Shown here piece after piece: positions 11,096 to 61,526 of a stretch of DNA of 63,791 nt (the stretch's first letter is position 1; the number at the start of each line of letters is the position of its first letter). The notes beneath the pieces are model-generated. The model saw nothing but the letters and a program-made list of their open reading frames with translations, was not told the DNA's origin and did no database searches. The stretch spans positions 210 to 64,000 of the forward strand of contig MU057719.1 in assembly GCA_013265495.1 (NCBI GenBank), given 5' to 3'. The position numbers were made by a program, and so were the translations under genes. The stretch is from Vicugna vicugna. Taxonomy: Eukaryota.

Positions 11096-14000
11096 CAATA
11101 CAATGCATGTCTCCCAGGCCCCGTGAAGACTCGTCAGGTGGAAGAGACCGAACAGTGCCGCCTTCACACGTGCCTGAACATCCTGGTGCCGAGCGCTTCC
11201 AGACAAACCGGGGGCCCAGACGGGAACCGGCTGGCATGACTTCCCATGTCCTCGGAGATCAAGGTGGCAGCAGCCATCAAAGGCCTCTGACGAACGCTCT
11301 GCTCTGCAGGGCCGTCAGAACGCCCCGCCTCCCGGCCCCTCCAACCCCGGGGCGCCTTCGGCAGGGGACACCAAGCCTTGAGAGCCAACCCCGTCCAGAG
11401 ACCTCCTCCTGAGGTGGTGGACGGGTTCACAGGGCGATTCTCCCTGCAGACGCCGGCCTGGGGAGCCCCCCCACCTCAGAGGGGTCTCATCACGCCCACA
11501 GCCTCACAGCCACAGCCCTGCACACGGTCTGCAGGGAGGACGGAATCCAGCCCCTCGTCCACCTGCAGACCCTCGCCCCCTCCAGCCTGCCCACCGCAGG
11601 CAGGGCGGTACCCACAGCCACGGGACCGTTACTGTCACAATAACCGAGGTAGGAAGCACCCCCCCTCCCCAGGTGGCCAGGACCGCCTGCAAAGTCACGC
11701 GTCGCGCGCGCGCCCCAGGGCCCTCCCGCGGCCTGCGGGCCACCAGGCACCCAGCCTCCCACCGGACCCACAGTGCAGAAAGTCCCGTGTGAGCCGCGGG
11801 AAGGGGCCCTGCTGCTCCCGGTCTCCAGGGAACAGCCTGCAGCCCTCTGGGCCAGGCAGCGGGAGGTCCCAGGTCCGCAGCTCGCGGGCAGAAGCAGGGC
11901 CCGCCTGACGCTGTGGGGTCTCTCCGGCCCCCTCCTCGCCAAGCCCCGGGTGGAGACACCCCTCCCCTGACCCTGGCTGCTTGACTCCACAGGGATCCCG
12001 AGCACCCAGGGGGACCCAGGCCGGCATTCCCCACCCCCGGAAACCCCTGCTCACCTGAGGAGCGATTCCAGACGAAAGCCCCTGGCCCAGACATCAACAC
12101 GAGACTGTGCAATCTCGCCACCGTCACCCTGCCCCCGCCGGCCTCTGCTGAGGGTCACACCCTCCCTGATGCCCCGCTGGCCACTGGCCCCACCCCGCAG
12201 GCTCCCAGCCATCTGCCCCAGGCAAGGGTCCAGGCCTTCCTGGACCTGAACCGGAGATCGAAACGCACCTCCAACTCCCGCACGTGGTCCTCAGCGGCCC
12301 GTCAGCCACCCACACAGACCAGAAGCTGCAGAGGTGGCACTGGAGCAACAGACGGGGTCAGACTGACAAAGCCGTGGGGAGTGGACAGATGGAGAAAAGC
12401 GCCAACGAGGCGCGCCCAGCCGCCCTCAGCCCCCGCAGGAGGAGCGCGCGCCCAGCAAAGCGTCCCCGAGTGTGGCGGGACCCAGGGGGCCCACACAGCC
12501 CGGCCCCGCAGCAGCCCCACACCACACCCCTCGCCACCCAGGTGCGCGCTGGTCAGCTCGCGTTCACCAGACTGGGTCCTGCACCCCAGGGGGCCCGGGA
12601 CAGGCTGCTCCTGGAGGAGTCCGGGGTCAGAGGTCACAGCCTCGGCCTGACACCCGCTCACGGCACCCTCTCCTTCGAGACCTTGCTGCCAGGTCCCGTT
12701 CACGTCGCAGAGGAGGAATCCCGGGCCGCCTCCCCGGCGGTGGCCCCGCTCCTGCCCCAGGAAAGCTCAATTCCAAGGCCATGTGAGTGGGAAAGCCAGG
12801 CCCCCGGAAAAAGGGACCCAGGGATCAGGTAAGGCACCGGGCCTCTCCAAACGGCTGAGGGAGGGCAGACGGAGCCGGGCTGGGTGGCGCAGGCAGCGCC
12901 GTCACCTCCCCGCCAGCACCGGGGGTGCCGCGAGGAACGCTCTAGTTCGCAGTGTTTTGTCTGCTGCCCCTTGGAACGTTCAACAGCTGAAAAGCAGATC
13001 TGGATCTTGGCCCAGAGCTCACGGGCTCCCCGCCCCCCGGGGCAGGCTCCGCCTCCAGGCCCGCTCCTGTTTAAGGCTCGCCCCAGAGGAGGGTCCCTCC
13101 ACCGCAGAGCCCCTCCCCACCGTCCCACCCTCCAGACCCCTGCATGGGGAACACCAGACACGGGCCAGCTCCAGACCCACGGAGGAGCCAAGGGATGTGC
13201 GGGGCCCACCAGGCCGTCCCCACATTTCACAGCCCAGGCCATTGAGGGTGCAGGGCTGGCCAAGGCCACCAGGCACACAGGGAAGGCCAGCTCGGACAGC
13301 CAGGCCCCGGCAAGCAGCTTGTGCTGGCCCCTCCTGGAAGGCGCCAGGGGGTTCCGGTGTCCTCAGGGCCAGTGCAGGACGAGGGCCAGAGCCAGGCCAG
13401 GCACCCACCAGCGCCACCAGACCTCAGGGGATGCGCCCTGGGGGGGGGGGTCCTGTTTCCTTGGTCAGGTGGACAGAGGTGCCAGGGAGGCTGTGACCGT
13501 AACACCCACCCTCCGTCGCAACATCAGGACAGGCATCGGCCCTCAGCAACCACAGACCTGGGGACCAGCCCCGCTGTGCTGCAGCTGTGCTGGGTGACCT
13601 GCGGTGGGTGACTCAGCCTCTCGGGCACTGGCTTACCGAGTGCGGGAGCTGTGTTGTCACGGGGCCCTGCTGGCGGCCCTGACTGGCTTCCCACCCAGCT
13701 TTGCCACTCCCCACGTCCTGCCGGACGCGCTGGCCCTCCAGGCAGTCTTGTCTGCGCTTCCGAAAACACAGCGCCCGTTCCTAAGCCCACGCAGGGAGGC
13801 GTGCGAGGCACCTCTGTAAGGACCTGACGCTCGGCCCCGACCTCCCCCAGCAGCAGAGCCTGGGCGGGGCAGGACAAAGCCCTGGGGCCCCCAGCTGCTC
13901 ACAGTCCCAAGACACAGGCGCATCCCAGAAAAGGTGACGCGGGACACGCAGCGCCCCGGGAACACCACCGTGGGCGCCCCCCACCGGCAGCTCCTCGGGC

Positions 14001-14409
14001 AGCCCCTCAGGGCGCCCCCTCCAGAGCAGGGCCACGCCTCTGGGGACCAAGGCGGCAGGGCCCCCTGCCAGGCCTTTCCCTTTGGGCTTCTCGGCACAGG
14101 GGGCTGCCCGTGAGCCCAGGTGGCTCCATTGTCTGAGCTCAGCGTCCTGTCTCTAAGGCGGTGGGAGCCCCAGCACCTAACTCGCCAGGTGAGTCTGGAA
14201 AAGCAGAGATAAAGGACAGCTCGTGACCCTGCACGAGAGAGAGAGCACCCCTCGGTCACGGCCACTACCACGGCTGATGTCGCTGGCAGGTGGACGCTGA
14301 CATGGGCCAGGACGGCCACGGCTCTGCCCACCAGGTCCGTGTGGTTCGCTGTGGCCCTCGGGGGTCAGACCCCACCTGGCCGCCCCGCGACCCACGGCAC
14401 TGGCCCCGC

Positions 14410-14460
14410 TGCGCCGTTTTACAGATGAGGACACTGGGCTTGGAGACATGCAGTGTGGGC
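14410..14460 (-). mobile_element. MIR core fragment
   Basis: CCGTTTTACAGATGAGGACACTGGG. Confidence 0.5.
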
Positions 14461-16569
14461 TCCAGGCCACCAGCTGTGGGGACTGGGCTGTGCACCCCAC
14501 TTCCTCCCCAGGTGGCTCTGGAAGGACTGGATGTCCAACGTCCCTACAGCAGGGCAGCGCCATCAGGATCAGGCTCACACCAGGGCTGGTGAGGCCGAGG
14601 GAGCCCGGGGCCGCTGCCCCCCGTCCCAGCCACACACGCGGGGCTGCACCGCAGGAAGCATTTATTTATCTTGGCCCTGAGGGCCTCCATCTCTGACTCT
14701 CACCCTCAGTGTCACTTCACTTTGGACAAAGGGGGCCTGTGGGGGCCACGCGCACCCCAGGAAAAACCCCGGTGGCCCCTACATTCTCTCGAGAGTTGGG
14801 TAAATCCCTGTTTGGAAACCGCACAAAACACACCACTCAGCATGTGCCGGCGGCGACTTGGCCCCGCACCAAAGTACCCAGAATCCTTCCGGCTCCCCTT
14901 GCCTCACTTCAGGACAAACTGGCTTTTAATGAGAGGAAGTCCGTCCAGGGGAAGGATGTGGCTGCTGGGGAAACAGTTTTCAGCGGTGCTGGCCCCTCCT
15001 TTTAAAGAGACGGGAATTCCCAAGAACCAAAGTGGTTAAAACAGCAAGTGTGTACTTGGGATCTGCTGGAGCATGAAGAGTTACATCACTTTAATAGCAA
15101 AAGAAATAAAAACTCTCGTCTCACTCGGCCTGAGACAGAGTGGCGGGGACACGAGGACACCCAGCCAACCTGCTCCTTGCGCTGGGAGGGGCACCCGAAG
15201 GCATTGCCGCCTTCCATTGGTCTTTAGGGAAGACGGCACATTTTCCAACGTGAGCACATCCGACAGCCAGGGAGGCCCGGAGCGAGGGAGATGCTGCCTC
15301 CAGAACGTGAACGCCTTGCGGCTCACAGAAGTCTGGTGCCCGGCGGCCACTCCCGCTCAAGTTGAGAGCCACGACCAGGAAGAAGGGCTCCCCGGAGTTC
15401 TGAACATCTTCCTGGGCCACTGAGTCCGTCCAAAGCCCGCCTGCCTTCAGCCGCAGAACGGGACCTACCTTGTGTGCCAGAAGGCCAGGCAGAGGGGGAA
15501 ACCCGGCGCTCTCCGGTTCAAGACCCGTTCTTCCTGAAAATGACAAATGGGCTTCCTTCTCTGGTCTTGAACGTGGGTGACCACAACGGGATGCTGGCTG
15601 CGGGCCAGGCACAGGCGGCGGTTCTCACGCACGCCTCGCGCGCACGAGCTTCCCGGGGAGGCGAGGCAGCCACCCAGGAGCTCACGGCATGTGAGCGGCG
15701 GAGCCAGGCTCCGCCCCCAGCGCGTCCCTCCAGTGACGGAGACTCGACAGGCCTGTGCTCACGGCAAAGCAGCTGTTCTGGCTCTTCGTTCAGGATCCTG
15801 ATTTTTTTTTAAGATGGGTAACGCTTGTTTCTGGATCTTTACAGTAAGACACCCTCTCCGCTCACCAAAGGCGCTAGACATTAGAAAGAGATGACCGCAC
15901 AGAAAAGCTGCCACACAACCCGTGAAATCAAACCCCGCGCACGGCCCGCCTGGGCGCACCCACCCGCCTCCGCGTTCAGACCTCGAGCAGAACAGGCAGC
16001 GGCAGTGACCCCGGCTTCCGGGCGCCCAAGCCCAGCGCGTCCCAGCTGAGCCCGGTGAGCCCAGGTGAGCCCCACTGTCTCTCAGTGTAGAGTCTTGGCA
16101 CCCATGTTTTACAGGTGAGTCTTGAAGCTCCCCACACCACCTGCTTTACCTGGATCCTCCTGCCAGCAAGATGTCTACACCAGCAAAAGCCCAGTCCCAG
16201 TTCATGAGACCCCCCCCCAGAAGCCGCGCCAGCCTGGCCATCCTGCAGTTCATCCCGTCTCTGGGCAAGTCTGACAGTGCCAGCCGGATCGAGGCACCCA
16301 GCCGTCCCGGACGCCTGCTCCGCAGAACGGCTGCCAAGATCAGCAGGACCACAGACCGCCCCCCTTCACGTGCTGCCCCGCCCCCCTCACTTCCACGTGA
16401 GGCGGCCGTTCTGGTCTCTCCCTGAGGCTCCACGTCCGACCTACTGGGCTCCAGGCCGCCCTTCCACCTGCTCCAACGTGGATTTATCAAGAACAGCTGG
16501 CTGCCACGTGCCAAGTACTTATTACAAGCATTCAACCTCGTGTAATTTTTGCCACGTTCTTCAAAGTAG

Positions 16570-24059: not shown

Positions 24060-24227
24060 CAGGGTACAGCTGCTTGGTGGGCGCGCTGAGCTGGGCGTCC
24101 TTTGTGACTCTGTAAGCCACGTCCGGGCCTTTGGAAGATCGCCGCGTTGCACAAAAGCCTGTGGTCTTGGTTATGCCGTCAGGCAGGTTGTGAAAATCTA
24201 GAACCTTCAGGAGATCTGCTGGCTGAG
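24060..24227 (-). CDS. COL5A1: COL5A1 exon 2 (168 nt), start of TSPN/LamG-like (PARP) domain
   Basis: Acceptor TCTGTCATTTCAG|CT, donor CCTG|GTAAGA. Translates (A)[55 protein letters not shown]; phase 1 at both ends. Confidence 0.98.
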
Positions 24228-27010
24228 CTGAAATGACAGAGGGGAGGTGGGGGGTCAGCCACGAGCAGGAGAGGCGCAGCCGAGGGCTAGGGGAACTGGG
24301 AGACCCCTCCCCGCCCGCACCACGACAACCTCTGACCCTCAGCAGGCGCCGAGGGACCAGCCCAGAAGCCAGGGCTGCAGGGGGCAGGACGCCCCACTTT
24401 GCTGACATGCACATCGAGCTCCGCAGAGCTGGGTCCTGGCCCAGTCCCTGCGAGCAGCCGCCTGGGCACACCCGCCCCCGGCTCACACTTAGTCGGTCCT
24501 CTCCTCCCGTGGCCCCGGCTGGCACGCGCCACGCAGCCCCTGGGCTCCTCAACAGCGCTTCTCGTCATTGTCACAGAAAACCCACCTCAACCCAAGCTGC
24601 AAGGCGGTGCGAGGTCCCCCACGGATGGAAGAAGCAGCCCTGCCCAGGGTGGCCTTGAGGAGCAGAGTGACCGACAGCTCTGGGGGCCTGCTACGTATCG
24701 GCCGGAGCGCCTGCCCCCACCGGGCACACTGTCTCATCCTCACCGATTAAATGTGATTCTCCCGTCACAGCTGACACGAAGAGCCAGCTTCCGCTTGCCC
24801 CCAGAAGACAGACAGCTACAGGGCAAGACGGGGCAGAACCAAGAGCGAGGGAGGGGCAGCCCCTGCGTCTCTTCTGGAAAGTTCCTGACCTCCATCCATG
24901 GCTCCCCAGAGAAGGGGAGCAGCCCCTGAGGACGGGGAGAGTCTGACATTCTGGGGAGCTCAACCGTTCCCCCTCCAAATGCCAAAGGTGGCCTTCACGG
25001 GACTGTGCACACCCCCTCATCGCGGAGACCCCAGGCCTCCAGCCCAGGACGACACAGGCTTGGGGGCCACACACCCACCGCCCTCAATCACAGCCGGCCT
25101 CGTGTGCAGAGTCCTGCCATGTCACTGCCAACAGGACGACCTGGGAGTCCAGGCAGAGAAAGTCGGTCAAGCGTGGAGTCAGAGCGCCCTGTCACTCCAT
25201 CGCAAAGCACGTCCCCTGTCCAGTTTCCTGCAAGGCACCCTGTCACCCAGATTCCAGAGCTCTGAGGTGCCCCGCCTCCAGCCGTGTCACTTCCACAGCC
25301 TGGCTTTGCTGCAGACCTCTGCCACTTTAATCAAGGGGCCAGAACATAGCGTGTGAGGGTTTCCCACCCCTGCAGAGGGAGGGGCGTGGGGGGACCCAAG
25401 ACACTTCCAGTGCAGGCTGGCATCCGCCTCCTTGTGGCCTACTTTTCCCGAGAGGTTCCAAGCTGCTACCCAGAGCCCCGCCCCCACACAGGGTGGTCAG
25501 CACCCCTCATCAGCGTCCTCCCCGAAGCGCTGGGCACTGGCGACCCCCCTACCGGCCCCCAGAGGCCTGGCTGGTGCCTGTCCACTTGACACCAGAAACA
25601 GATGCCGGCACAGCCCGGGGCCTGGACGCGGCCCGTGGGAAGGGGCGGCCGTGCCAGCTGCTGGCTCACCTGCCCTGGGGACGCAGCCGAGCTGTGGCTC
25701 ATCTTTGGGCTTCGTCTCTGAAGCCAGCTGGGCCAGGGGAGGCACCAGAGCCGCCGGCTGGGCGCCTGGGGCTCACGCCCAGCCGCCGCGATGCTCTCGC
25801 CAGACGCAGGCCTGCTTTCCCCATCGCCGGCGGGAGGGCCGGTCTCCAGAAGCCTTCCGGGCCATGTTCATGGCGCTCTGTGGCAACGAGCTGAAAGGCC
25901 ACTGACCTTCCCAGGCCCAGCGCCACCCCTCCCGCCGGCCAGGGGCTCCCTGCGCCAGGGCTAAAAACAGCAGTTTTGCTTTACAGAAGGTGTGGCGAGG
26001 GCCCGAGAGGCCTCTGGCGGCACAGCCTCCGTGGGCTCCTCCCGGGGCTGCCAGGCCTGCGCCCCCCACCGCCCTGCTTCGACGCAGGCTCAGGAGGAAT
26101 CGGGGTCTCAGCTCCTCTGTCCCAGGAACTCCGCTGGGAGACCGCCCCGGCGGTGGGGCTGAAGCCTGCGTCCCCCCACTACAGAGGTCTCGAGGTCACG
26201 TCCTCTCTCGAGGTCAGAGAAAGACGCTGTAGCGTCTGGACCCAGGCCTGGACCCAGCACAGTTGCCTGGACCCAGAGCCCGACACACGAGCCCCGCTCC
26301 CGGCTCCTCCCTGCGAGCGGAGAGCACCCCGGAACGTCGCGTGTCCGCCGAGTCAGGGAGAACAGACAAGGCACTGCCCGTGTGGCCTGCGCACCGACCA
26401 GCGGACCCTCGTGCCTGAGAGCCACGGCCGTGACCTGGCTGTGACCAGGGCTGCCCCAGTGGTGGGAGCAGAGCCCCCAGGAGTGCGGGCACCAGGCCAC
26501 GGCTCACCCATGCTCTTGCAGGGCCTTCCTGCTCCGTGGAGCCCGGGGAGCCGAAAACCACGTTTCCCAGATCCCTCTGCAGGAAGGGCTCAGGCGGCAG
26601 GGCGCGCTCCACACGCAGAGTGGAGCCGGAGCGTGAGGGGCCTGCAGGGTCTGCGCCCACGTGCCGGGGCCTGGGACCGGGCCGGGGGCCACTCCTGGTG
26701 ACCCCACCCCTCCAGCGCGGCCAGCGGCGGTGGGCCCCAATTCCTGCACTCAGTCTCCTTCCCCTGCGGCAGCCCCCTCCCTTTCTGCTTCTGCACCGAG
26801 CCTGCCTGGGACCGGGCAGATGACCAGGTGTTATACCTCCAGGCCTGTAAAGGAATGGACTCAGGGGAGGTCAGTTCTAAGGCAGAAAGGAGGCACCTGA
26901 GAAAGGATTTGGAAACACAAAGTTGAGTTCCAGGTGCCATGTGCCAAGATGGCAGCGTGAGGAGCCTGGACAGCAGAGGCACAAAGGCGGAGCTCAGATA
27001 TAGGAGGGCA

Positions 27011-27125
27011 GGATGGATGGATGGACAAACGGAGGGACAGATGGATGCACAGATGGCTGGATAGACGGATGGACGGATGGATGGATGGATGTTTGGATGG
27101 ACAGACAGACGGATGGATAGATGAG
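27011..27125. repeat. (TGGA)n-type simple repeat
   Basis: Degenerate GGAT/GGAC tandem tract. Confidence 0.9.
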
Positions 27126-31399: not shown

Positions 31400-31779
31400 G
31401 GACACATGGGCACAGGGATGAAGAGAATGGAAGAACAGAGAGATGGATGGAAGGATGGACGGACAAATGAATAGATGGATGGATGGATGCATGGAGAAAG
31501 ATGGATGGATGGATGGAGAAGAATGGATGGATGGATGGAGAAGGATGGATGGGTGGGAGGATGGATAGACAGACAGATGAATGGATGGATGGAAAGGTGG
31601 ATGGATGATTGAACAGATAGAAGAAAGGATAGAAGGATAGAGATGATTAATGGGAGGGTGAACGAAAGGAAGGATGGATGAAGAATGATTCCATGGATGG
31701 TTGGATGCATGAATGGAAGAATGGATGGACAGATGGATGATTGGATGGTTGGATGGATGGATGGGTGGATGTGAGGATG
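31400..31779. repeat. (TGGA)n-type simple repeat running into an assembly gap
   Basis: Degenerate GGAT/GAAT/AGAT tract preceded by an L2-like end (GAGATGCTCAGCAAACCCTCACTGAAGGATGG). Confidence 0.9.
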
Positions 31780-31941
31780 NNNNNNNNNNNNNNNNNNNNN
31801 NNNNNNNNNNNNNNNNNNNNNNNNNNNNNNNNNNNNNNNNNNNNNNNNNNNNNNNNNNNNNNNNNNNNNNNNNNNNNNNNNNNNNNNNNNNNNNNNNNNN
31901 NNNNNNNNNNNNNNNNNNNNNNNNNNNNNNNNNNNNNNNNN
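31780..31941. other. Assembly gap (162 N)
   Basis: Run of N directly after the TGGA tract. Confidence 1.
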
Positions 31942-34933: not shown

Positions 34934-35033
34934 GGGGGTGGCAGGTACAGCTCACTGGTAGAGCGTGTGCTTGGCATGCACGGGGTCCTGGGTTCAATCC
35001 CCAGGGCCTCCGCTAAGGGAGGTTAAAAAAAAA
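34934..35033 (+). mobile_element. tRNA-derived SINE (camelid type, Vic-1-like)
   Basis: A-box-like TACAGCTCACTGGTAGAGC, B-box GGTTCAATCC, A-rich tail. Confidence 0.85.
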
Positions 35034-40879: not shown

Positions 40880-41170
40880 TAGATGGATCAGTGGGTGGGT
40901 GGGTGGATGGATTTATGATCTGGATCAATGGGTGGATTTAAGGTGTGGGTCAGTGGGTGTATGAATGGATGGATGGATGGATGGACGGTTGGATAGATGA
41001 ATGGATGGTTGGTTGGATAGACAGATGGCTGGCTGGCTGGCTGGCTGGATGGATGGATGGATGGATGTTTGGATGGATGGTTGGTTGGATAGATGAATGG
41101 ACGGTCGGTTGGATGTGTGGACGTTTGGTTGGATGGACAGATGTCCGGATGGATGGATGAATGAATGGAG
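40880..41170. repeat. (TGGA)n-type simple repeat
   Basis: Degenerate GGAT/GGTT/GGCT tandem tract. Confidence 0.9.
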
Positions 41171-47390: not shown

Positions 47391-50248
47391 AGTTAAAGAA
47401 AGGAAAACATCCCAGAGAATCCGACTCTTCGCCTTCGGAGAAAATTCTCAGGCAGACACTCCTCTCTCCTGTGTCACGCACTCCTTCTACTCAGTTCTCT
47501 GGGTTAAGGCGAGGCCTCCGAGGGGCCAGGACCCCAGGGCTGACTCGGACCAGCAGCCCCTGGACCCCCCAGGTCCAAAGGCTGATGACGATCCTTTAGG
47601 CTCATCTCCATGCGCTCGCAGAGTGATGGATGCACCCGAGGGCCTGCAGGACGGCCAAGCCAACTGGCCCGCCCGGCAGCTCCCAGCTCTCCAGGGTGCA
47701 GAAGCCCCCCACGCCACCCTGGGCCTTCCCGCCCTCGACAACAGTCCTCCCCAGTGTCTGCGAATCCTGCTCGCGGGCCAAGCAGCTGTTTGTAATCGGA
47801 CAGGCCCCGGCCAGGAAGGGGAGGTGGGAGCCCGTCCCCGCTGCGGGGCCCAGGGCGCCGCAGGGTGTGTGAGGACGGGCGGCCCCCCGCACCTCCTCTG
47901 CCCCACCGCGGCCCTGGCAGCGCTGAAGCCATGGGGAGGGCATGAACAGGAAAAATGGAGTGAACATCTCCACTTAAGAGCAGCTTTCAATTTAGTTCTT
48001 CGAGCACGGAAGCTTGAAGCCCCCAAGCCCACGTTTGGTGGCACAAGAGCTAAACCCACGGCCCTGGAGGCTGGGCTGCAGTGCTTTCCATCTGGGCACC
48101 GCCACCTGCACAGGGGAAGCTCCCCAACAGGGTGCTCGGCAGACAGGGGGCGCCAGCTCTGCCCTGGACAGGAGGGACCCTGAGACAGATCTGAACGCCC
48201 CTCCGGCCGCGGGTCTCAGAACAGGTCTGCGCGGCTCAAACACAGCCCCAACGGCGGCTTCCAACCGCAGGGCACCGGACTCCGGTCCCTCGCTTCTCAG
48301 GGGCCTGTGCCCCTGGGGACCTCGAAGTCCTCCAGGTCTGAATTTATTTGTCCGCAAAACGACCCCAAGGCCAGAGGCCCGCCCCCTGGCTCAGTGAGGC
48401 CTCCCGGTAAGACGCTCGACTTGCCTTCAGGGCTCCCTTGCTGCGCCCCCTCACAGCCCACCTGGCAGGACACCGGACCTGCCACCAGCCCCCTACGCTC
48501 CCAGGTAGCCCCAGGCCAGGGTCCTGGAACTGGAGGACTCCACCCTCAGCAAAATGCCAGCAAAGCTGCTGTCTGGGGCCAGCCCTCCAGCAGGGACATT
48601 CCTGGGGGCTCCAGCTGAAGTGACCCTGAGCAGAAAGCTCCCTCTGGTCCCCACCCACAGCCTCCAGGCTGAGCCAGGCCTGGACCCACGTTGTCCCCTC
48701 TGCTGCTTGGCCCGGCCTACTCTCGGTGGCGGCCTGAGACCCCGGGGACTAGGAGCTGCCCAGCTCTGAGCCCGGGAGGAGGGACTCATCACTGCGGTCA
48801 AGTCACTCAGGGGCAGCTCACACAGTGAATCCAGGCCCCTCCCAACAGCAGACAGCGGGGTGTCCCGCCTCAGGAGTGTCCCCTTCCGTGGCTGTAACTG
48901 GCAGAAGAGTCCAGAGTCTGCACCAGGAGCCCAGCCCGGGTCTTCCTCAGGTCTGTACAGGACCGAGGGTGGTCTCTGAGTTCTCTCCTGAGGCCCCTCG
49001 ATGAGCCACGGCGCCTGAACACTGACCTCGTGCCTGAAACTCACAGCAGCATGAAGCCAAGACCCAGCGCGAGTGCTCTGAGGGCCCTGAGCAACCTACG
49101 TGCTGAATGCCTGCGTTCCCCGCAGCGGCCGGTGAGACAGGTGCAGTTTGTGCCCCTTTCACAGATGGAGGACTGCGGCATGGTCACTTCTAGGTGTCTT
49201 AGCACCTGTACTGAGCCCAGGCACATTGGGACGGGGAGGAAGCAAGGTCCCTGCCCTCCCAGCTCACAGAGGGGCTGAGAGCCTGGGGGTCAGTGGCGCC
49301 AACTCCTTCCCTCCCCACTCAGTGTACTGGACTGGCTGAGCCCCTCTGTGTCCCTTAGGTGGGGATGCCCTCCCGCACTGATGGCGCCACAAAGACAGAA
49401 GTGCACGTGCTTAACACGCTGTGAACGCAGATGAGAGTTGTGTGGGACGTGCCGTCAGGGACCAACTTCACGGTGACTGGGTGGACAAGGGCGGGTGGGG
49501 GCTGGACCACAGGAAAGGGCTGGCCAAGGGCCGATCCTTGTCAAACCTGCGTGGATCGTGGGGATCTGCTGTGCTGTGTTTGAAATGTGCCCTGACGACG
49601 ACAACAACACAACAACAACAACGCTCTGGAGCTGAGCGCGAGTCCTCCCCTCCTCTCGAGGGTCACCTTCCCCGCCCCGCAGTCTTCTGATCTCTGTTCT
49701 GCGCTACTGCAGAACAGCAGTCCTTCCTTAGGGGAAGGGCGAGCCCGCCCTCCAGGCAAGAAGGCAGGTGAAGCACCACTGCCCCTCCAGAGGTGGGGCG
49801 CTGTGAAGACAGCGGGGAGGACACCGGGGTCAGGGAGCACCTACCTCTCCCTCGCTTCCCTCCTGGCACTTCTCCCCCTTAGGTGTCCCTACCCCATCAT
49901 TTATGCTGATACCTGCACTCCACCTGTTTCAGGTGAGAGAAGAGGTCCTGCAAGATCGCTGGCCTCCCTCCCACACCCCTCCACTCAGCCAGCTGGCGCC
50001 AGCTCCTCCCCCCCCGGAGACCCTGGCATCACCGGGCCAAGCCGCCCCACCGCCCTGCCCAGGTGTGAGCCCTGCACCACCACCTCAGGCCCTCCAGAGC
50101 GGAGCGCTGGCGCCACCACACTGAGGGCCCCGGAATCTCCATAGGATCCCAGAGTTCACTGAAACGGAGCCATGGCCCCAAACAGCCATCATTTAAAGTA
50201 TGAACCTAAATAACATAAGCAAATTTTCCCTTGAAAAGAATTACACTT

Positions 50249-50422
50249 GTGGGGGAGGGTGTAGCTCAAGTGGCAGAGCACAGGCCCGGCGTGCACAGGG
50301 ACCTGGGCCCAGGTTCCAGCCCCAGCACCTCCTCTAAAAATAAATAAATCAGCCTAATTATCTCCCTCCCCCCCCCAAATTTTTTAAATGAAATTTTAAA
50401 AAATTATTACAATTTAAAAAAA
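50249..50422 (+). mobile_element. tRNA-derived SINE (camelid type) with target-site duplication
   Basis: Head GGGGGAGGGTGTAGCTCAAGTGGCAGAGC, AAATAAATAAAT/CTAATTA tail; flanked by AATTACACTT at 50239-50248 and 50423-50432. Confidence 0.9.
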
Positions 50423-51470
50423 AATTACACTTAGAAACCCTGTTCCCTGCACTTCCATCCAAGAACATGCTCTTCGTCCCACCTGCTCAACGTGAACGTT
50501 TTCTGGTCCATGAGCTACGGAAGATGCAGCCCCCTTCCTCCTTCTTTGCATGAAAGCAACCGGTCGAGGGACCCTCTCCCCCTAGAAGAGCAAATTCTAG
50601 ACTGAACACTGACAATGGAGGCTGCCTCCTCGACCTCCTGTCCCAGGAGGACACAGAACAGCCTCAAAGAAGGAAAGGTTTCAGATTCTCCCCAAAGGAA
50701 AAAGAAGAGTGCAAAAGAAGAGACGTGACTGTAAAGACGGGTCCCAGAAACTCCACCCCAGCAGACACCGCCCCCCGAGCGGGGCCCTCACAAACTGAGC
50801 CTGGGGCTCAGGGCCGGTCTTTCTTTCCCCACCGCACCCTCCCCTGTGCAGGACACCTGCCACCCAACAGGCTCCTGCACTGACCCACGTGGTCCAGGGC
50901 CCCAGGGCCCACTGGCTCACAGCTGTCCTCCCAAAGAAGGCCTCGACGTTCAGCAAGCTGAGCCTACGCCGCACTCCCAGCTTTACGCGTCAGAAACGGA
51001 GGAGGAGGAATCCAGGCGGAGGGGCAGAGGCTACTCACGGCTGGTGGCGGCCGGGGGCCTCTTCCTGAAGCACAAGGACCCTGCCGCCGCGGGGCTGTCC
51101 CACAGCGAACAGGAGCCAGGAGCTGCCAGAGCCCCGGCCTGGCTGTGACAACGGCAGCTAATAGCAGCACACACGCCGGTAACCGGTGTGCCTTCGCCTG
51201 GGAGGCGGAGGGCGACCGTCACTCCTTCGGGCCTGCTGGGCTCACAGAGCCGCCTCCGCGCCTGTCCCGGCAGGTGTGGGGGTCACGGGCACTGCACAGG
51301 TAAGACCAGAGCAGGGTCTGCTTACATATGAACAGCACCAGGGGAAGGGCACACACGGGAAAGCGCCACCTGCGTCCACAAGCGACACCTCCCTTCAAAC
51401 TCATGGGGTGGGACCCCAAAAGCCAGACCCTGACAAGACAGGCTGGTATCCGCCTGGCCAGAGCCCCACT

Positions 51471-52342
51471 GGGCTAGCAGGTGCCTCCCTCTGATTGGCT
51501 GGTTTTCCAGGGGCTGGCGGGTGCCTCCTTCTGATTGGCCAGTGGCCCAGGGGCTGGCGGGTGCCTCCCTCTGATTGGCCAGTGGCCCAGGGGCTGGCGG
51601 GTGCCTCCCTCTGATTAGCCAGTGGCCCAGGGGCTGGCGGGTGCCTCCCTCTGATTGGCCAGTGGCCCAGGGGCTGGCGGGTGCCTCCCTCTGATTGGCC
51701 AGTGGCCCAGGGGCTGGCGGGTGCCTCCCTCTGATTGGCCAGTGGCCCAGGGGCTGGCGGGTGCCTCCCTCTGATTGGCCAGTGGCCCAGGGGCTGGCGG
51801 GTGCCTCCCTCTGATTGGCCAGTGGCCCAGGGGCTGGCGGGTGCCTCCCTCTGATTGGCCAGTGGCCCAGGGGCTGGCGGGTGCCTCCCTCTGATTGGCC
51901 AGTGGCCCAGGGGCTGGCGGGTGCCTCCCTCTGATTGGCCAGTGGCCCAGGGGCTGGCGGGTGCCTCCCTCTGATTGGCCAGTGGCCCAGGGGGCTGGCG
52001 GGTGCCTCCCTCTGATTGGCCAGTGGCCCAGGACCTGTCAGTGCCTCCTTCTGATTCACCAGTGGTGCAGGGACTGGAAGGTGCCTCCCTCTGATTGGCC
52101 AGTGGCCCAGGGACTGGCGGGTGCCTCCCTCTGATTGGCCAGTGGCCCAGGGTCTGGCGGGTACCTCCCTCTGATTGGCCAGTGGCCCAGGACCTATCAG
52201 TGCCTCCTTCTGATTCACCAGTGGCGCAGGGACTGGAGGGTGCCTCCCTCTGATTGGCCAGTGGCCCCGGGGCTGGCGGGTGCCTCCCTCTGATTAGCCA
52301 GTGGCCCAGGGGCTGGCGGGTGCCTCCCTCTGATTGGCTGGT
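51471..52342. repeat. Minisatellite/VNTR with a 40-bp unit, 22 units
   Basis: Unit AGTGGCCCAGGGGCTGGCGGGTGCCTCCCTCTGATTGGCC. I counted 22 CTGATT cores at ~40-bp spacing from 51491 to 52330. Confidence 0.98.
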
Positions 52343-52409
52343 GAGTGTTTCACTACCTCCCACTTTGCACTTCACCAGATACAATCACCTGTTCAGGAGT
52401 CTGATTCCC

Positions 52410-52520
52410 GCAGTGCACCAGAAGCTCCCCCAGGGCAGGGGTGCTCGCCCCCTGCTCACCTGTGCACCTGCTGCCCATACCTGGCACAGGCCTGACTCGT
52501 GTTAGAGGTCCACAAGCACT
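52410..52520 (+). mobile_element. L2 3' fragment next to the VNTR
   Basis: AAGCTCCCCCAGGGCAGGGG...CCCATACCTGGCACAGGCCTG pattern. Confidence 0.5.
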
Positions 52521-53699
52521 CGAAACACAGCCAGTCAGCCCCGAGTTCTCCACACAGGGGCCAGCCTCCCCTGAGGTCCCCCGCCGCCACCCAGGGAAGA
52601 TCCCCGCTAACGCCTCGCCCGCCACCCTCCCGTCACCCTGCCGGCAGAATGCAAGACAGTCGCTTCCCACCTCCATTCAGGTTGAAATGCTCGCTCTTCT
52701 GCACTGACAGATCGCTATTTTTCCAACACAAGGGTCAGAGTTTTTACAGTCAGATCACTCCCACTGCGTACACACATTTCAATGTCACTTTCGGCATTTA
52801 CTTAAAAAATCAAAGAGGCCAGTAAAATCCCTATTGCAAAGGTGCTGGCAGGAAACAACAGGACAGAAGAACGGGTTTCCTCCCAAAAGGACACAGGCCT
52901 AGGAAACAGAAAACAAAGGAACTCCCATTTCACCCGCAGAAGCATCACAGGAAACAGGGTGGGCGCCTACCCCTGGAGCTCTGTGTAACGAAATTTGGAG
53001 AAAAGTAGGTCAGACTGTGTTCCCATTTCTTAGGTCTGAGTCACCAAAGAGTGGCGACATTGCTCCTCGTGCGGGCTATTCCTTAGGTTGGGAATCTGCC
53101 TGAAAAGCCAGCGGGTGAGTCGAAGCTAACAGGATGATGGCCCAGACCGTGGGATGTACGTGACACGAAGTGCCCCAGCGCCCACCGCGAAGCCACACAC
53201 ATCTGACCAAGAATTTACTCATTCTATGGACCCCGTTCCAGCCGCCTGGGGCCGGGCGGGGAAAGTAATGGCGTCTGAGTTAGCAAAGTCCCTGCGGGGA
53301 CCCATCCTGGATGCGCCCTTCAGATGGTCAGCCATCGCTCACGGTCCTGTCTCAGAGGGAAGACCACAGCCCTGGAGGCAGGATGTAGGCACATCCATTC
53401 CTATCACTGGGCCCCAGTTCCTCCTTGAAGTAGAGAGTGGTCCAAGGGGAAAGGGAGGGGTGTGCTGACCATGAAACGTCCCATGACTGCCCCAGGATGC
53501 AAGTTCCACGCTCAGGCAAGGGGTCAGATAAACCCACCCATGGGCACTGCCCGGGTCACCTCTGCTGCTTACACGTGAGGAGGCACCAGTGTGAAAATTC
53601 CCAGGACAGAGGGAGCCACTCATAAGGCCAGCCAGTGAGCAGAGCCAGGAACTCCCACCGGGCCCCAAACCTACTGCCTCCTGCCGCCTCAGGGCCCGG

Positions 53700-53885
53700 G
53701 GAGGACATAACAGTGACACAGTGAGAGGGGCTTGCTCTGTGCTTTGTACACACTGTGCACAGAACAGTCTTGAGAATCCTGCAGGAGCCACAGTCAAAAC
53801 CCCTTCTTACAGATGGGGAAAGAGGCCAATTGCACAGCTGGTGGGAGTGGAGCCGAGATGTGAACCCAGGCCATCCCGCTCCTGC
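53700..53885 (-). mobile_element. MIR fragment
   Basis: CCCTTCTTACAGATGGGGAAAGAGG...CACAGCTGGT...GAGCCGAGATGTGAACCCAGG. Confidence 0.7.
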
Positions 53886-54299
53886 TGCCCACCCAGGACG
53901 ATCACCCGCACTGTGTCTCCAGGCCACGTCCTGTGGCACCAGCAGCTCTGCCGGTGGTACCAGTATCTCCACGAGCCCGGCCAGAATCTTAACACTAACA
54001 TTTGGCCAAGTGCAGACATCAGATGAGCCGATTAGAGGGGAGAAACAGAGGGAAAGGCAGAGGCTCTAAGAAAACATTGCCTCCCAGGAGTGAAAAAGGA
54101 CTCGTCAGGTTCTCAGACCCCGCTGGACCTCACTTGTCCCGGGGCTGGACCCACAGCCTCGCGGCCGCCCAGCTGGCTCCGCGGCCACGTTTCCATCTCC
54201 TCCTCTTCCATCTGGCAGGGGTGGGGCGCGATAAGGAGGGAGACGCAGCCTCGCCAGGAGTTCCGCCAAGACATCAGGCCCTGCCTTGGCAGAGGGTGA

Positions 54300-54440
54300 A
54301 AACACACGTACCTGTGCCTGGACGTGTGTGTGCACATTTGTGTACACCCACAAACACAAACACACATGTGGGTCCACACAAACCCGCACGTCACATGCAC
54401 CCACATGCTTCAACACATACACGCAGACACATGTGCACAA
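54300..54440. repeat. Degenerate (CA/TG)n alternating purine-pyrimidine tract
   Basis: ACACACG...GTGTGTGTGCACA...ACACATACACGCAGACACATGTGCAC. Confidence 0.7.
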
Positions 54441-54564
54441 CCCTCGACTGGGCTTGTAAAGCATTTTCACGTGTGTAGCCCCAAGGATCTCACCAGCCCC
54501 AGAGCCTCCTTGGACAGACATGCTCCCTACACTGGGCTCCCTCTGGAGTACTTGCATTCAAAGA

Positions 54565-55190
54565 GCATCGTAGCTATGGCCCAGCAATCCCACTCCTGGG
54601 CATGTATCTGGAGGGAGCTCTAATGTGGAAAGACTCATGCACCCCAGTGTCCACAGCAGCACTACATACAACAGCCAAGACACACAAGCAACCTAGATGT
54701 CCAGACAGATGACTGGATAAAGAAGTTGTGGTGTATTTATACAATGGAATACTACTCAGCCATAAAAAAGAACAAAGTAATGCCATTTACAGCAACATGG
54801 AAGGACCTGGAGACTGCCATTCTAAGTGAAGTCAGAAAGAGAAAGAAAAATACCATATAACATCACTTATATGTGAAATCTCTAAAAAAAAAAGACACGA
54901 GTGAACTCATCTACGAAACAGAAACAGACTCACAACATAGAGAACAGACTCATGGTTACTGGGGAAGGAGGTGGGAAAGAATAAATTGGGAGTTTGAGAT
55001 CTGCAGACACTAACTACTATGTATAAAACAGACAAACAGCAGTTTCATACTGCGTAACACAGGGAACAGTACTCAGCATCTCGCAGTAACTGCAGTGGAG
55101 AAGCATCTGAGAGCGAATGTATGTGTGTGCATGTGGCTGAAACATGACGCTGTGCACTGTAAACTGACTATACATCAGTTTAAAAAAGAA
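54565..55190 (+). mobile_element. Younger L1 3' end (about 0.6 kb, 5'-truncated)
   Basis: CCCAGCAATCCCACTCCTGGGCAT...ACAATGGAATACTACTCAGCCATAAAAAAGAA...ACTGACTATACATCAGTTTAAAAAAG; little decay. Confidence 0.92.
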
Positions 55191-58100: not shown

Positions 58101-58389
58101 CCACGGGCACGATGGTGGCAGCTAGGGATAAAGACCCCAGGTCCCCAGGGCCATGCCACTCTCTCCTCCCCTCCCCCAGCCCCTGATTGGCCAGACACTC
58201 CGACTCCTGTTCACCCGCTTCGGCCCACCAAGCACTCGCAGAGCCAGGAAGAGAGGGACTAGCTCAACTGGCAAGTGGAACATGGGAAGTGATGCTTCCC
58301 ACACGTCCTCAAGTATGAAGCGGAGGAGAGAAGGGGGAGGATGGGGAAGCAGTGCCTTCTCAGTGGACAGCTGTGCACGGAGCCACTGC

Positions 58390-58450: not shown

Positions 58451-59398
58451 AGGGGACCTCTGGGGCCTCGAGCGCCAGCAACTGAGGGTGTATGAAGACG
58501 CATCCCACAGGCGACCACAAAAGGGGATGGCGTAGGAGGTCCCCGTGGGGGACCGAGTCAGGGCTGCAGGCACCCAGGCAGGCCGCTGTCAGTGCCGGCA
58601 CGCCTGGTGGAGGCCGCCCGCTGGAGACGGCTCCTTCTAAGGGCAGGCTTCTGGCAGGAGGGGTCCCACATCTGCACATCATCTGAACCCTGCACTGCCC
58701 AGACTCCAGGACCATCTCCCCGCTTTCCTTCATGAATCCCGTCTCTGGGTGGCAAACCCAAGAAAAACTGCCTTCCAGGAGGTCAGGAGGTGGGCGTAAG
58801 AGCAGGGCTGCTCTACCACCCCCTGGGGCCCCTCAGTATGTCTCACTGAGTACTTAGGTGGCAGGGACTGCAGGAAGCCCTGTTCCCTGGGAAGAGAGGC
58901 AGCAGAGTCTGGAGGCAGTGGGAGAGGATGCTCGGGAGAAGTCCAGGGCTGGGGGCCCGGCTCCTGGGATGCCCCTCAATGGCCCCTCATCCCAGGAGGC
59001 CGGGGGAGAACTGACCCCTCTGTGACTCTAGGGGGCGACCCTTCCCGGGTTTCAGGAGACGAAGCTCTGCAGCGGGGCCAGAGCAGCGCTCTGGTGATGC
59101 GGGACAGAGAACGCCAAGTTTGGGGACAAAAGTTTGCCTGCCGGGTGGACAGCCCCTCTGGCTGATCCAACACGGAGCCCTTCCTCGGCTCCCCGACAGC
59201 CCCGCCGGCGCACGGGGTACCGTATCGGCGTGTCTCCCTCCCCGGGGCCCCCAGCTAATGGCATTTGGAGTCTCGGCCCGCGCATTCCACAGCCAAAGGG
59301 GGAAGGTTGTGCAGGCGCAAAAGAGGCCGGCGGCGCCCGGGGATGACAGCCGCGCTGGCCGCGCGCCCGGCCCCGCCGCCCCGCCGCCCCGGCCCCCG

Positions 59399-59531
59399 NN
59401 NNNNNNNNNNNNNNNNNNNNNNNNNNNNNNNNNNNNNNNNNNNNNNNNNNNNNNNNNNNNNNNNNNNNNNNNNNNNNNNNNNNNNNNNNNNNNNNNNNNN
59501 NNNNNNNNNNNNNNNNNNNNNNNNNNNNNNN
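59399..59531. other. COL5A1: Assembly gap (133 N) expected to contain the COL5A1 start codon, signal-peptide coding sequence and intron-1 donor
   Basis: 5'UTR-like sequence lies on the high side and intron-1-start-like sequence (GCTGTCATCCCCGGGCGCC...TTGGCTGTGGAATGC) on the low side. The gap length is close to the ~109 coding nt expected plus flanks. Confidence 0.85.
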
Positions 59532-59883
59532 GGGGCGCGGGGCGCGGGGCGGGCGCGCGGGGACGCGCGGGGCGCGGGGCACGGCCGGGGCAGCGGACTC
59601 AGCGGGGCCGGCACAACTTTAGCAAGTCATGGGAGCAGGCGCTGGCCCGTTCTCTTTGTGGCGGTGGCTCTCGGGAGGGTCGGCTGGCGGGCTCGCCCAC
59701 GGGCGGAGGGCTCGACCCTGGCCCGCGGGGCGGCCCGGGCCCCGCTCGGCTGGCTCGCCCTGGCCTCCCCGCCTCCTCCAACTCCTGCTCGCCTGCTCCT
59801 CGCCGCCGCCGCCCCGCGACTCGCTCCCCGTGGGCGCTCCGCCCGAGTGAGGTCCTGCGCCGGCCGCGGGGACGAGGAGTGCG
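59532..59883 (-). other. COL5A1: COL5A1 exon 1, visible 5'UTR; transcription start approximately 59883
   Basis: Minus strand reads CGCACTCCTCGTCCCCGCGG...AGGACCTCACTCGGGCGGAGCGCCCACGGGGAGCG...GCCACAAAGAGAACGGG...CCCATGACTTGCTAAAG, closely resembling the human COL5A1 mRNA leader as recalled. The TSS is inferred by homology only. Confidence 0.85.
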
Positions 59884-59906
59884 GACCTCGCCTTGGGCGC
59901 CGAGCA

Positions 59907-59937
59907 CTCTCCCCCTTTCCCTCCCTCCCTCTCCCCT
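59907..59937 (-). promoter_or_regulatory. Polypurine GA tract immediately upstream of the TSS
   Basis: Minus strand reads AGGGGAGAGGGAGGGAGGGAAAGGGGGAGAG. Confidence 0.6.
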
Positions 59938-59978
59938 GGAAGGCACCCGCGGAGGCTGTCGCTCCCCCACGGCCGCAG

Positions 59979-59986
59979 CAAATCAG
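59979..59986 (+). promoter_or_regulatory. Degenerate CCAAT-like box CAAATCAG about 100 bp upstream of the TSS (candidate NF-Y/CBF site)
   Basis: Sequence GCAGCAAATCAGAG. A functional CAAAT NF-Y site is recalled for the human COL5A1 proximal promoter. Confidence 0.6.
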
Positions 59987-60089
59987 AGCGGGCGCTGGGC
60001 TCGGCCAGGCCGGCCCCCGCCTCCCACTGGGCGCCGCGGGCGAGGGGGTGGGGACAGCGGGCGAGTGGCAGCAGGGAAGGGGCCGGCCC

Positions 60090-60107
60090 GGGGCGGGAGC
60101 TGACTCA
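60090..60107. promoter_or_regulatory. GC box followed by a consensus AP-1 site in the proximal promoter
   Basis: GGGGCGGG then TGACTCA at 60101-60107; motif match only. Confidence 0.45.
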
Positions 60108-61526
60108 GGGCGCGCGCGGCGTCCCCGCTCTTTCGGCGAGTGCGCGCGGTCGGAGCCCCGCAGCCCACTCGGGACCCCCACGCTCCCCGCCCCAGGTGCC
60201 TGCACCCGGCCGAGCCCGAGAAGCAGCGTGGAGGGGCCCTGATTGCCACCGTTTGGGGCTAGAAAAGTTGCAGTTCCCCCCGCCTAACTTTTTCTTTCAC
60301 TTGCAAGAGTACAGAGCTCCTCTTCTGGGTGGAGGCTGAACTTCCAATCCAGCCAGATCGGGGCGCCCAAGGCTGTGGCAGACATGTCCACCCCGACAGC
60401 CGACCCGCCCTCCACCGCCCCCCAGCTTCTCCTGCCCCAGCTGAGGTCTAGGCTCCCAGGAGGTCCCCAGGGAGCTCGGATGCCACACATCTGGGATATT
60501 AATCAGGCGAAGTTAGCCGGCAGCCCCTCCCCCCTCGCTTCCTCCTACTGTCTGCTGACCCCTTTGCATCGAAAAGGAAAGCAAAGAAGACACCCCTCTG
60601 GGAGGTGACAGCAGGCAAAGGATGAGGGGTTAGGGCCCCTGCCCTGGGACGGCCTCTGGGAGCTGCCTTTCTGTCTCCACTTCTTTGAGCCTTGGCGAGG
60701 TCCCCCTGGAGCAGGAGCCTGCCAGGCTCTGGTGGCAGGTGGGAGCTCCCTCCATGAGGCTCCCCAAGCTCAGAAAGCCCCCCTGCTCAGAACCCTTCCG
60801 GGAAGAGCAGTAGGGCTAGCTTTAAAGAGCAATGGAGGTGGATCAGGAGGCCTCCAAGCCCTAAGCCATCCCCATCCCCTTCGAGCAAATAACTCAGCCG
60901 GTGGTACCGAAGCACGTCGGGGACCCCTATGCTCCCTGTCTCCCGTTACCCCCCCAGACCGGGCTGAAATTCCCCAGATGCCCTTTGATTCCTGTCACCC
61001 TGGGAACAGGAAGGGAGGGGAGGGGGTAGAGGGGAGGTTTGCTGAGATGGCCCCATGCTGCCCCCTGAGCTGGGTGATGGGGCGCTGGGGCGCTTCTGGC
61101 CCTCAGGCCCCCTGTTTGCCCCGTGTGCTCTTCGAGGTGTTAAATATTGCACCGGAAAAGGACGAGACACATGAAGTGCAGCAGAAATGCTCCTCTGGCT
61201 TTCACGGTTCCTCGTTGCTGTTGTTTTTGCTCCCTGTAAAACCCCACGTACGATCCGGGGAACATGTATGACTTGTGAGTCGTGTGAGCTGGTTCAGCTG
61301 GAGAGCTGGCCCTTTACTGTCCTATGTCTCAGTGAGAGAGAAGTTCTATTGGACTCTCCCTGAGCCCCCAGCCCCGCCCCACACTGGGAAGGCCAGCTTC
61401 TCCTGAAGTCTTGGGGGCCACCGTAGGTCAGGGGTCTAGGCAGCAGAAGACAGCACAGCTTTCAGAGCTCCAGCTCTCCCCAAGGACGTGGGGTGCACCT
61501 TCAGTGACAGTCACACATGCCTCTCT

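Follow-up and report, generated by a model that had tools for sequence, protein, structure and literature searches.

The window analysed here, a stretch of 63,791 nucleotides from Vicugna vicugna, holds the promoter, intron 1 and exon 2 of COL5A1 on its minus strand (Table 1). A six-frame motif scan located COL5A1 N-terminal sequence near 24.2 kb on that strand, where it translates cleanly as an exon. The 56-aa exon 2 piece had no match in PDB or Pfam. A large protein search returned 24 fragments for it, with 'collagen alpha-1(V) chain-like' (80% identity) as the sole named match, and the naming of the exon rests on this one labelled homologue. The GC-rich promoter and 5′UTR lie at ~59.6–60.1 kb, inside the only strong CpG island of the region (observed/expected ratio, o/e, 0.95–1.01), and the coding part of exon 1 falls within a run of N at 59399–59531. 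With a presumed transcription start site (TSS) near 59850–59900, intron 1 is ~35 kb long. The minisatellite considered below lies within it, between promoter/5′UTR and exon 2 on the gene's strand, so that the intronic position 7.5–8.4 kb downstream of the TSS, given in a preliminary description of this DNA, holds. Long (GGAT)n, (GATG)n and (ATGG)n microsatellites occur in or near intron 1 at 27011–27123, 31442–31771 and 40961–41169, one of them adjoining a run of N (31780–31941). At 34941–35012 (+) Rfam gives a tRNA match of 38.7 bits where ARAGORN calls no tRNA gene; this is probably a relic of a tRNA-derived repeat.

Table 1. Features of the COL5A1 locus, in window positions (strand left empty where none applies).
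Feature	Positions	Strand	Basis
COL5A1 exon 2 (translation ending QLYP)	24061–24228	−	six-frame motif scan, clean translation, one named homologue
40-bp minisatellite, 22 units	51455–52342		Tandem Repeats Finder, anchors and units, RRCCAATSRG in 18/18 intact units
Edge unit 1, GGCTGGT replacing GGCCAGT	51483–51522		unit alignment
Homogeneous young core, units 3–13	51563–52003		unit alignment
Older 4-unit higher-order block A, units 14–17, with ATTCA unit 52043–52082	52004–52162		151/159 identical to block B
Higher-order block B, units 18–21, with ATTCA unit 52202–52241 and ATTAG unit 52282–52321	52163–52321		block comparison
COL5A1 CpG-island promoter, 5′UTR and exon 1 region	59001–60500	−	CpG o/e 0.67–1.01; sequence
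Promoter CAAAT-type box CAGCAAATCAGAG	59976–59988	+	sequence; mouse Col5a1 CCAAT-like motif in literature

Tandem Repeats Finder (51455–52338, period 40, 22.1 copies, 91% matches, score 1456) and unit alignment agree on an array of 22 units of 40 bp. Its 22 CTGATT anchors stand 39–41 bp apart, and the units run head to tail within the ~10–100 bp that define a minisatellite or VNTR. The + strand of the array contains CTCTGATTGGCCAGTGGCCCAGGGGCTGGCGGGTGCCTCC, and the sense strand of COL5A1 reads CTGGCCAATCAGAG, that is, with the box in CCAAT orientation. ATTGG is intact in 18 of the 22 units; the others have ATTAG (unit 4, start 51603, and unit 21, start 52282) or ATTCA (unit 15, start 52043, and unit 19, start 52202). 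The exact sequence CTCTGATTGGCCAG is present in 15 units, and every one of the 18 intact units fits the extended NF-Y (CBF) consensus RRCCAATSRG, pentamer and flanks together. Standard units have in addition a GC-rich half, GGGGCTGGCGGG, with one CpG; 19 CpG are found across the array. The unit number, the four broken boxes, the fit to the consensus and the GC-rich half had all been noted in the preliminary description, and all were confirmed. A 23-mer from the unit gives 18 matches, compared with 0 expected in shuffled sequence.

The units are not equally diverged. Nine of them (3 and 5–12) are identical, which indicates a young core, and units 2, 4 and 13 differ from the identical core by one change each, in unit 4 the ATTAG variant and in unit 13 an extra G. 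The promoter-proximal part, 52004–52321, consists of two four-unit blocks that are 95% identical to each other and is older. Judged by the alignment, ATTCA is a single event passed on by duplication of the block, and the ATTAG of unit 21 is later than that duplication. The first unit and the last (52322–52342) have the GGCTGGT variant in common, which marks the original sequence as it was before the array expanded. At 52337–52345 (+) the last unit passes into GGTGAGTGT, which is much like a good 5′ splice site on the strand opposite to COL5A1 and for which no sign of use was found.

The array itself goes far beyond what chance would give. Its 18 boxes are not to be reckoned in the same way: all descend by amplification from a single seed motif and do not count as 18 separate events. 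In the remaining 62.6 kb of the window there are 41 CCAAT/ATTGG pentamers and a single extended consensus, and when local 40-mers are taken as repeat units, 2.7% contain CCAAT and 0.077% the extended consensus. Mammalian genomes hold very many minisatellites and many windows have been scanned, so a handful of such arrays is expected by chance. In the unit alignment the five CCAAT columns have 6 changes, compared with ~1.1 per column overall, both being small numbers, and the broken boxes trace to 2–3 independent events. The pentamer columns are as variable as the other columns of the unit and show no sign of selection for CCAAT.

The one extended consensus outside the array (CCCTGATTGGCCAGAC, 58183–58192) is also found in intron 1, at a distance of ~1.7 kb from the presumed TSS, and the 12-mer CTGATTGGCCAG is common to it and the array unit. 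This may be a real, solitary NF-Y/NFI site close to the promoter.

The quality of the motif in the array is high. Binding of NF-Y depends on all bases of the pentamer and on its flanks (PMC3730095). The optimal flank is CAG directly 3′ of CCAAT, as found here, and NF-Y ChIP enrichment is strongest at repeats that hold several CCAAT boxes (PMC12065363). A spacing of 40 bp would leave room for adjacent NF-Y trimers. The units hold a second motif, TTGGC-CAGTG-GCCCA, which the preliminary description missed and which occurs in 15 units and nowhere else in the window. It resembles NFI/CTF sites in having the perfect half-site TTGGC, the correct 5-bp spacer and a near half-site, and differs from them in its second half, GCCCA in place of GCCAA, and in flanks that do not show the preferred A and T. 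The preferred form of the NFI palindrome is TTGGCANNNTGCCAA (PMC3082249). The full palindrome TTGGC(N5)GCCAA is absent from the array, where one perfect half-site is paired with one imperfect one. This NFI-like site overlaps that of NF-Y, so that NFI and NF-Y would compete for the unit and could not occupy it together. Both sites are broken by ATTAG and by ATTCA. Judged by the motifs, the array may well be bound by NF-Y, or by NFI at the overlapping TTGGC.

Most NF-Y-bound repeat sites are without active chromatin marks, and those in LTRs mostly lack both histone marks and transcription (Fleming et al., PMC3730095). The array could be of this kind, occupied by NF-Y and transcriptionally inert, with neither an effect on COL5A1 nor any meaningful titration of the factor. 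The quality and multiplicity of the motif favour such occupancy; dense methylation and closed chromatin in the intron could, on the other hand, exclude NF-Y altogether, and we consider inert binding a rather unlikely outcome. The preliminary description had also proposed a sink for NF-Y. Bound NF-Y sites number 5,000–15,000 per cell type (PMC3730095), of which 18 would be ~0.1–0.4%; genome-wide titration is implausible on these numbers, and the sink was rejected.

The COL5A1 promoter was said in the preliminary description to have only a degenerate CAAAT box, and this box was found again as CAGCAAATCAGAG. Set against the array edge unit in the reading CAGCCAATCAGAG, it agrees at 12 of 13 bases, with the same flanks as the array units and in an orientation relative to the gene opposite to that of the array. 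The match would fit both being NF-Y-type sites with optimal flanks. A CAAAT-type box in mouse Col5a1 has been reported to bind CBF/NF-Y (Sakata-Takatani 2004, as cited in PMC5768380).

Promoter box and array could be imagined to work together. The array would then be a new intronic enhancer, on which many NF-Y trimers, possibly with NFI at TTGGC-N5-GCCCA, open the chromatin and loop to an NF-Y-dependent COL5A1 promoter 7.5 kb away, the output scaling with the number of units in the way claimed for the ABO repeat of humans. The 18 full-consensus sites at 40-bp spacing, their CAG flank, the 15 units with an NFI-like site and the promoter box argue for such an enhancer, as do two precedents. In human ABO, a minisatellite of four 43-bp units binds CBF/NF-Y and enhances transcription in reporter assays (Kominato et al. 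1997, as summarised in the review PMC7187371), and the CCAAT/GATA repeats of the ERV-9 LTR act as a long-range enhancer (PMC3730095). Against it are the lack of better conservation of the pentamer than of the rest of the unit, the low CpG content of the array, which is not island-like, the apparent presence of only about three units in a relative (see below), the chromatin silence of most NF-Y sites in repeats (PMC3730095) and a dispute over the in vivo role of the ABO repeat (PMC7187371). With these points on both sides, an enhancer at this position seems unlikely.

The precedents do bear out the earlier statement that CCAAT arrays in repeats can act as enhancers. The COL5A1 array is like the ABO repeat in its tandem units of ~40 bp, each with a CCAAT box, a few kb from a promoter and, it appears, in alleles that differ in copy number (1 vs 4 in ABO). 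It differs in that ABO has 1–4 units upstream, at −3.8 kb, whereas COL5A1 has 22 units in intron 1, at +7.5 kb, and the unit sequences are unrelated; for ABO, moreover, NF-Y binding and reporter enhancement have been demonstrated experimentally (PMC7187371). With the U3 repeats of ERV-9/LTR12 and the related R66 tandem repeat it has in common multiple close CCAAT boxes in tandem units. The ERV-9/LTR12 repeats are strong NF-Y binders and can act as long-range enhancer or promoter (PMC12065363, PMC3730095). They belong to a retroviral LTR of primates that is present in many copies and has R/U5 and GATA motifs. The COL5A1 array, in contrast, is found at a single locus in a non-primate, close to a tRNA-derived SINE, and has neither GATA motifs nor features of an LTR. 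In architecture, then, the array resembles ABO and ERV-9/LTR12, and it is not a member of the LTR family. A literature search found no paper on a minisatellite in COL5A1 intron 1, and the locus seems to be undescribed; the kind of element is known, and with the ABO 43-bp NF-Y minisatellite as precedent it is not novel in kind.

Ordinary GC-rich intronic or subtelomeric VNTRs are a third point of comparison. Like them, the array is rich in GC, with a unit of this length, a young homogenised core and blocks of higher order, and its copy number appears to change rapidly between close lineages. What sets it apart is a unit with a full NF-Y consensus overlapping an NFI half-site, as would be found in ~0.08% of random local 40-mers.

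The likeness to ERV-9 raises the question of whether the array derives from a solo LTR, as its U3 enhancer repeat, or from a fragment of another transposable element, with a possible cryptic promoter. Its unit class of ~40 bp and its CCAAT content, both as in the ERV-9 U3 repeats, would suit such an origin. Its flanks, however, are unique in the window and have a single-copy depth of ~20–25 in DNA runs; pieces of the array itself stand at a depth of 8–39, which means that the unit is not a genome-wide family. For comparison, a nearby SINE reaches ~68,000. The array has neither TATA nor poly(A) signal, a single GATA-like match and no U3-R-U5 organisation of a multi-copy LTR of the LTR12/ERV-9 type, and the relative has the same flanks with apparently fewer units. 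With flanks that are unique in the window and of single-copy depth, and with no LTR signals, an origin from a transposable element was rejected; we regard it as very improbable.

The SINE in question, at 50235–50401, is a very high-copy tRNA-derived element with an A-rich tail, where the summed contig depth in DNA runs is as given above and that of its neighbours ~20. It appears to resemble camelid SINEs.

Searches of larger collections also failed to find relatives of the array. An exact 21-mer of the unit had 0 matches in metagenome contigs. A degenerate pattern with two CCAAT boxes found 62 loci there, none of them homologous, the best being a 22-nt match at the array edge. The 327-aa open reading frame (ORF) that runs through the array had 6 weak matches among 1.84 billion representatives, the best of which (P0026) proved to be an unrelated 37-bp minisatellite on a contig of 45% GC, with no DNA similarity. 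Rfam has nothing at the array. Among the metagenome contigs, eight (L007, L010, L016, L022, L035, L038, L051 and L054) hold unrelated tandem repeats, spaced ~41–50 bp, that pair CTCTGATTGGCTGG (CCAAT box) with CACGTGAC (E-box). These are probably eukaryotic DNA in environmental samples. Tandem modules of CCAAT and E-box seem to recur elsewhere, in a set that the search pattern had selected for two CCAAT boxes.

As to promoter activity, the array has a CpG o/e of 0.18 at 69% GC vs 0.95–1.01 at the real promoter, and it falls short of the o/e of at least 0.6 at high GC expected of a CpG-island promoter. The CpG content of the array is set by its seed unit, so that this argument is a weak one. 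RNA runs hold 0.32/0.30 of the promoter-side flank, compared with 0.15/0.08 of the flank downstream in the sense direction. In the RNA contigs, presence of RNA shows no step across the array, and in these contigs and index shares, where starts, strand and level are invisible, there is no hint of a transcript arising at it. A cryptic promoter at the array is unsupported, and the RNA result adds to the points against an LTR. An apparent zero depth at 52406–54242 in a DNA run was traced to a filter artefact; the same run holds 0.94 of the words of this flank.

The age of the array was approached by comparing contigs from public reads over the interval 49400–54400. DNA contigs from two organisms, A and B, are nearly identical to the window (3–4 differences per 0.9–1.2 kb). 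On their way in from the promoter-distal flank they break at the edge of the array, at 51559 and 51536 respectively, just before the core, and none crosses the core. Inside the array there are only short pieces, one of which, an exact 46-mer, covers the ATTAG of unit 4. The breaks and the pieces together indicate that the long array and its variants are real and common to both of these close organisms. In the older part, at 52120–52267, the contigs of A and B differ from the window at several positions of unit variants, among them 52196 (A>G in both) and 52150–52166 (in B). These differences are either polymorphism at the level of units or mis-placement from one higher-order block to the other.

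RNA-seq contigs from two studies are 3–5% diverged from the window and would therefore come from a related species. In each study one contig bridges the locus, joining 51509 to 52269 with 759 bp skipped and 62 letters ambiguous at the joint, which leaves ~129 bp, or about three units. The skipped segment ends in GG..CC, which is not splice-like. At k = 31 and a period of 40 bp a long homogeneous array would have broken the contig, as it does in A and B, and the bridge is read for this reason as a truly short allele. That the relative carries such an allele is likely, though contigs built from k-mers can misrepresent repeats. Two further contigs of the relative, L063 and L064, were found by way of the ORF at 52356–52676 (−) (P0025) and are 96.7% identical to the window over 52309–54609. 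They end inside the array at 52309, where 31-mers cease to be unique, and are silent on its length. An ORF piece at 51404–51553 (minus strand), which extends from the first array units into the promoter-distal flank, had no match in the protein search. The preliminary description had left open whether the array is specific to a lineage; the short allele at ~3% divergence points to a recent, lineage-specific expansion from about three to 22 units. With about three units in the relative, a large array would not be needed for basic expression of COL5A1.

An account that takes in the observed repeat structure, motif quality, gene context, young core and the apparent short allele of the relative is that of a neutral or nearly neutral, young, lineage-specific, GC-rich intronic VNTR, and this we hold to be the probable one, neutrality being our inference from the sequence. 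Some three 40-bp units in COL5A1 intron 1 would have formed a short proto-repeat that expanded to 22, likely by replication slippage and unequal exchange, a mechanism that we infer; a block of four units would have been duplicated first, and the run of near-identical units would have grown afterwards. The seed unit would by chance have held the optimal NF-Y site GGCCAATCAGAG, overlapping the NFI half-site TTGGC, and amplification would have copied that one NF-Y site 18 times. The array would be transcribed within intron 1 and spliced out with it. It may be occupied by NF-Y or NFI, and the most likely net effect on COL5A1 expression would be none or small.

Several facts speak against neutrality. 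The first introns of fibrillar collagen genes often hold enhancers. The 18 full-consensus units with the optimal 3′ flank, the NF-Y-type box with the same flanks in the COL5A1 promoter, and the enhancing capacity of the ERV-9 LTR array (PMC3730095) and of the ABO array (PMC7187371) all point the same way. An effect of the array on COL5A1 that depends on copy number is unsupported, and on balance we consider it unlikely. Bolder still, and quite unlikely, is the proposal that an expansion in this lineage only made 18 composite NF-Y/NFI sites that now form an enhancer, tunable by copy number, of a dosage-sensitive collagen gene, the length of the array being a heritable dial for COL5A1 output in skin or connective tissue. 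COL5A1 is haploinsufficient in classical Ehlers-Danlos syndrome.

As things stand, the array looks like an ordinary VNTR, specific to its lineage, with a unit that by chance is an optimal NF-Y site, and it serves as a caution against taking the number of motifs within a tandem repeat as independent evidence of function. Should the array modulate COL5A1, repeat expansion would here have given rise to a regulatory element, a clean example from nature, in which close lineages with about three and with 22 units provide a built-in comparison and the units with ATTAG or ATTCA are ready variants.
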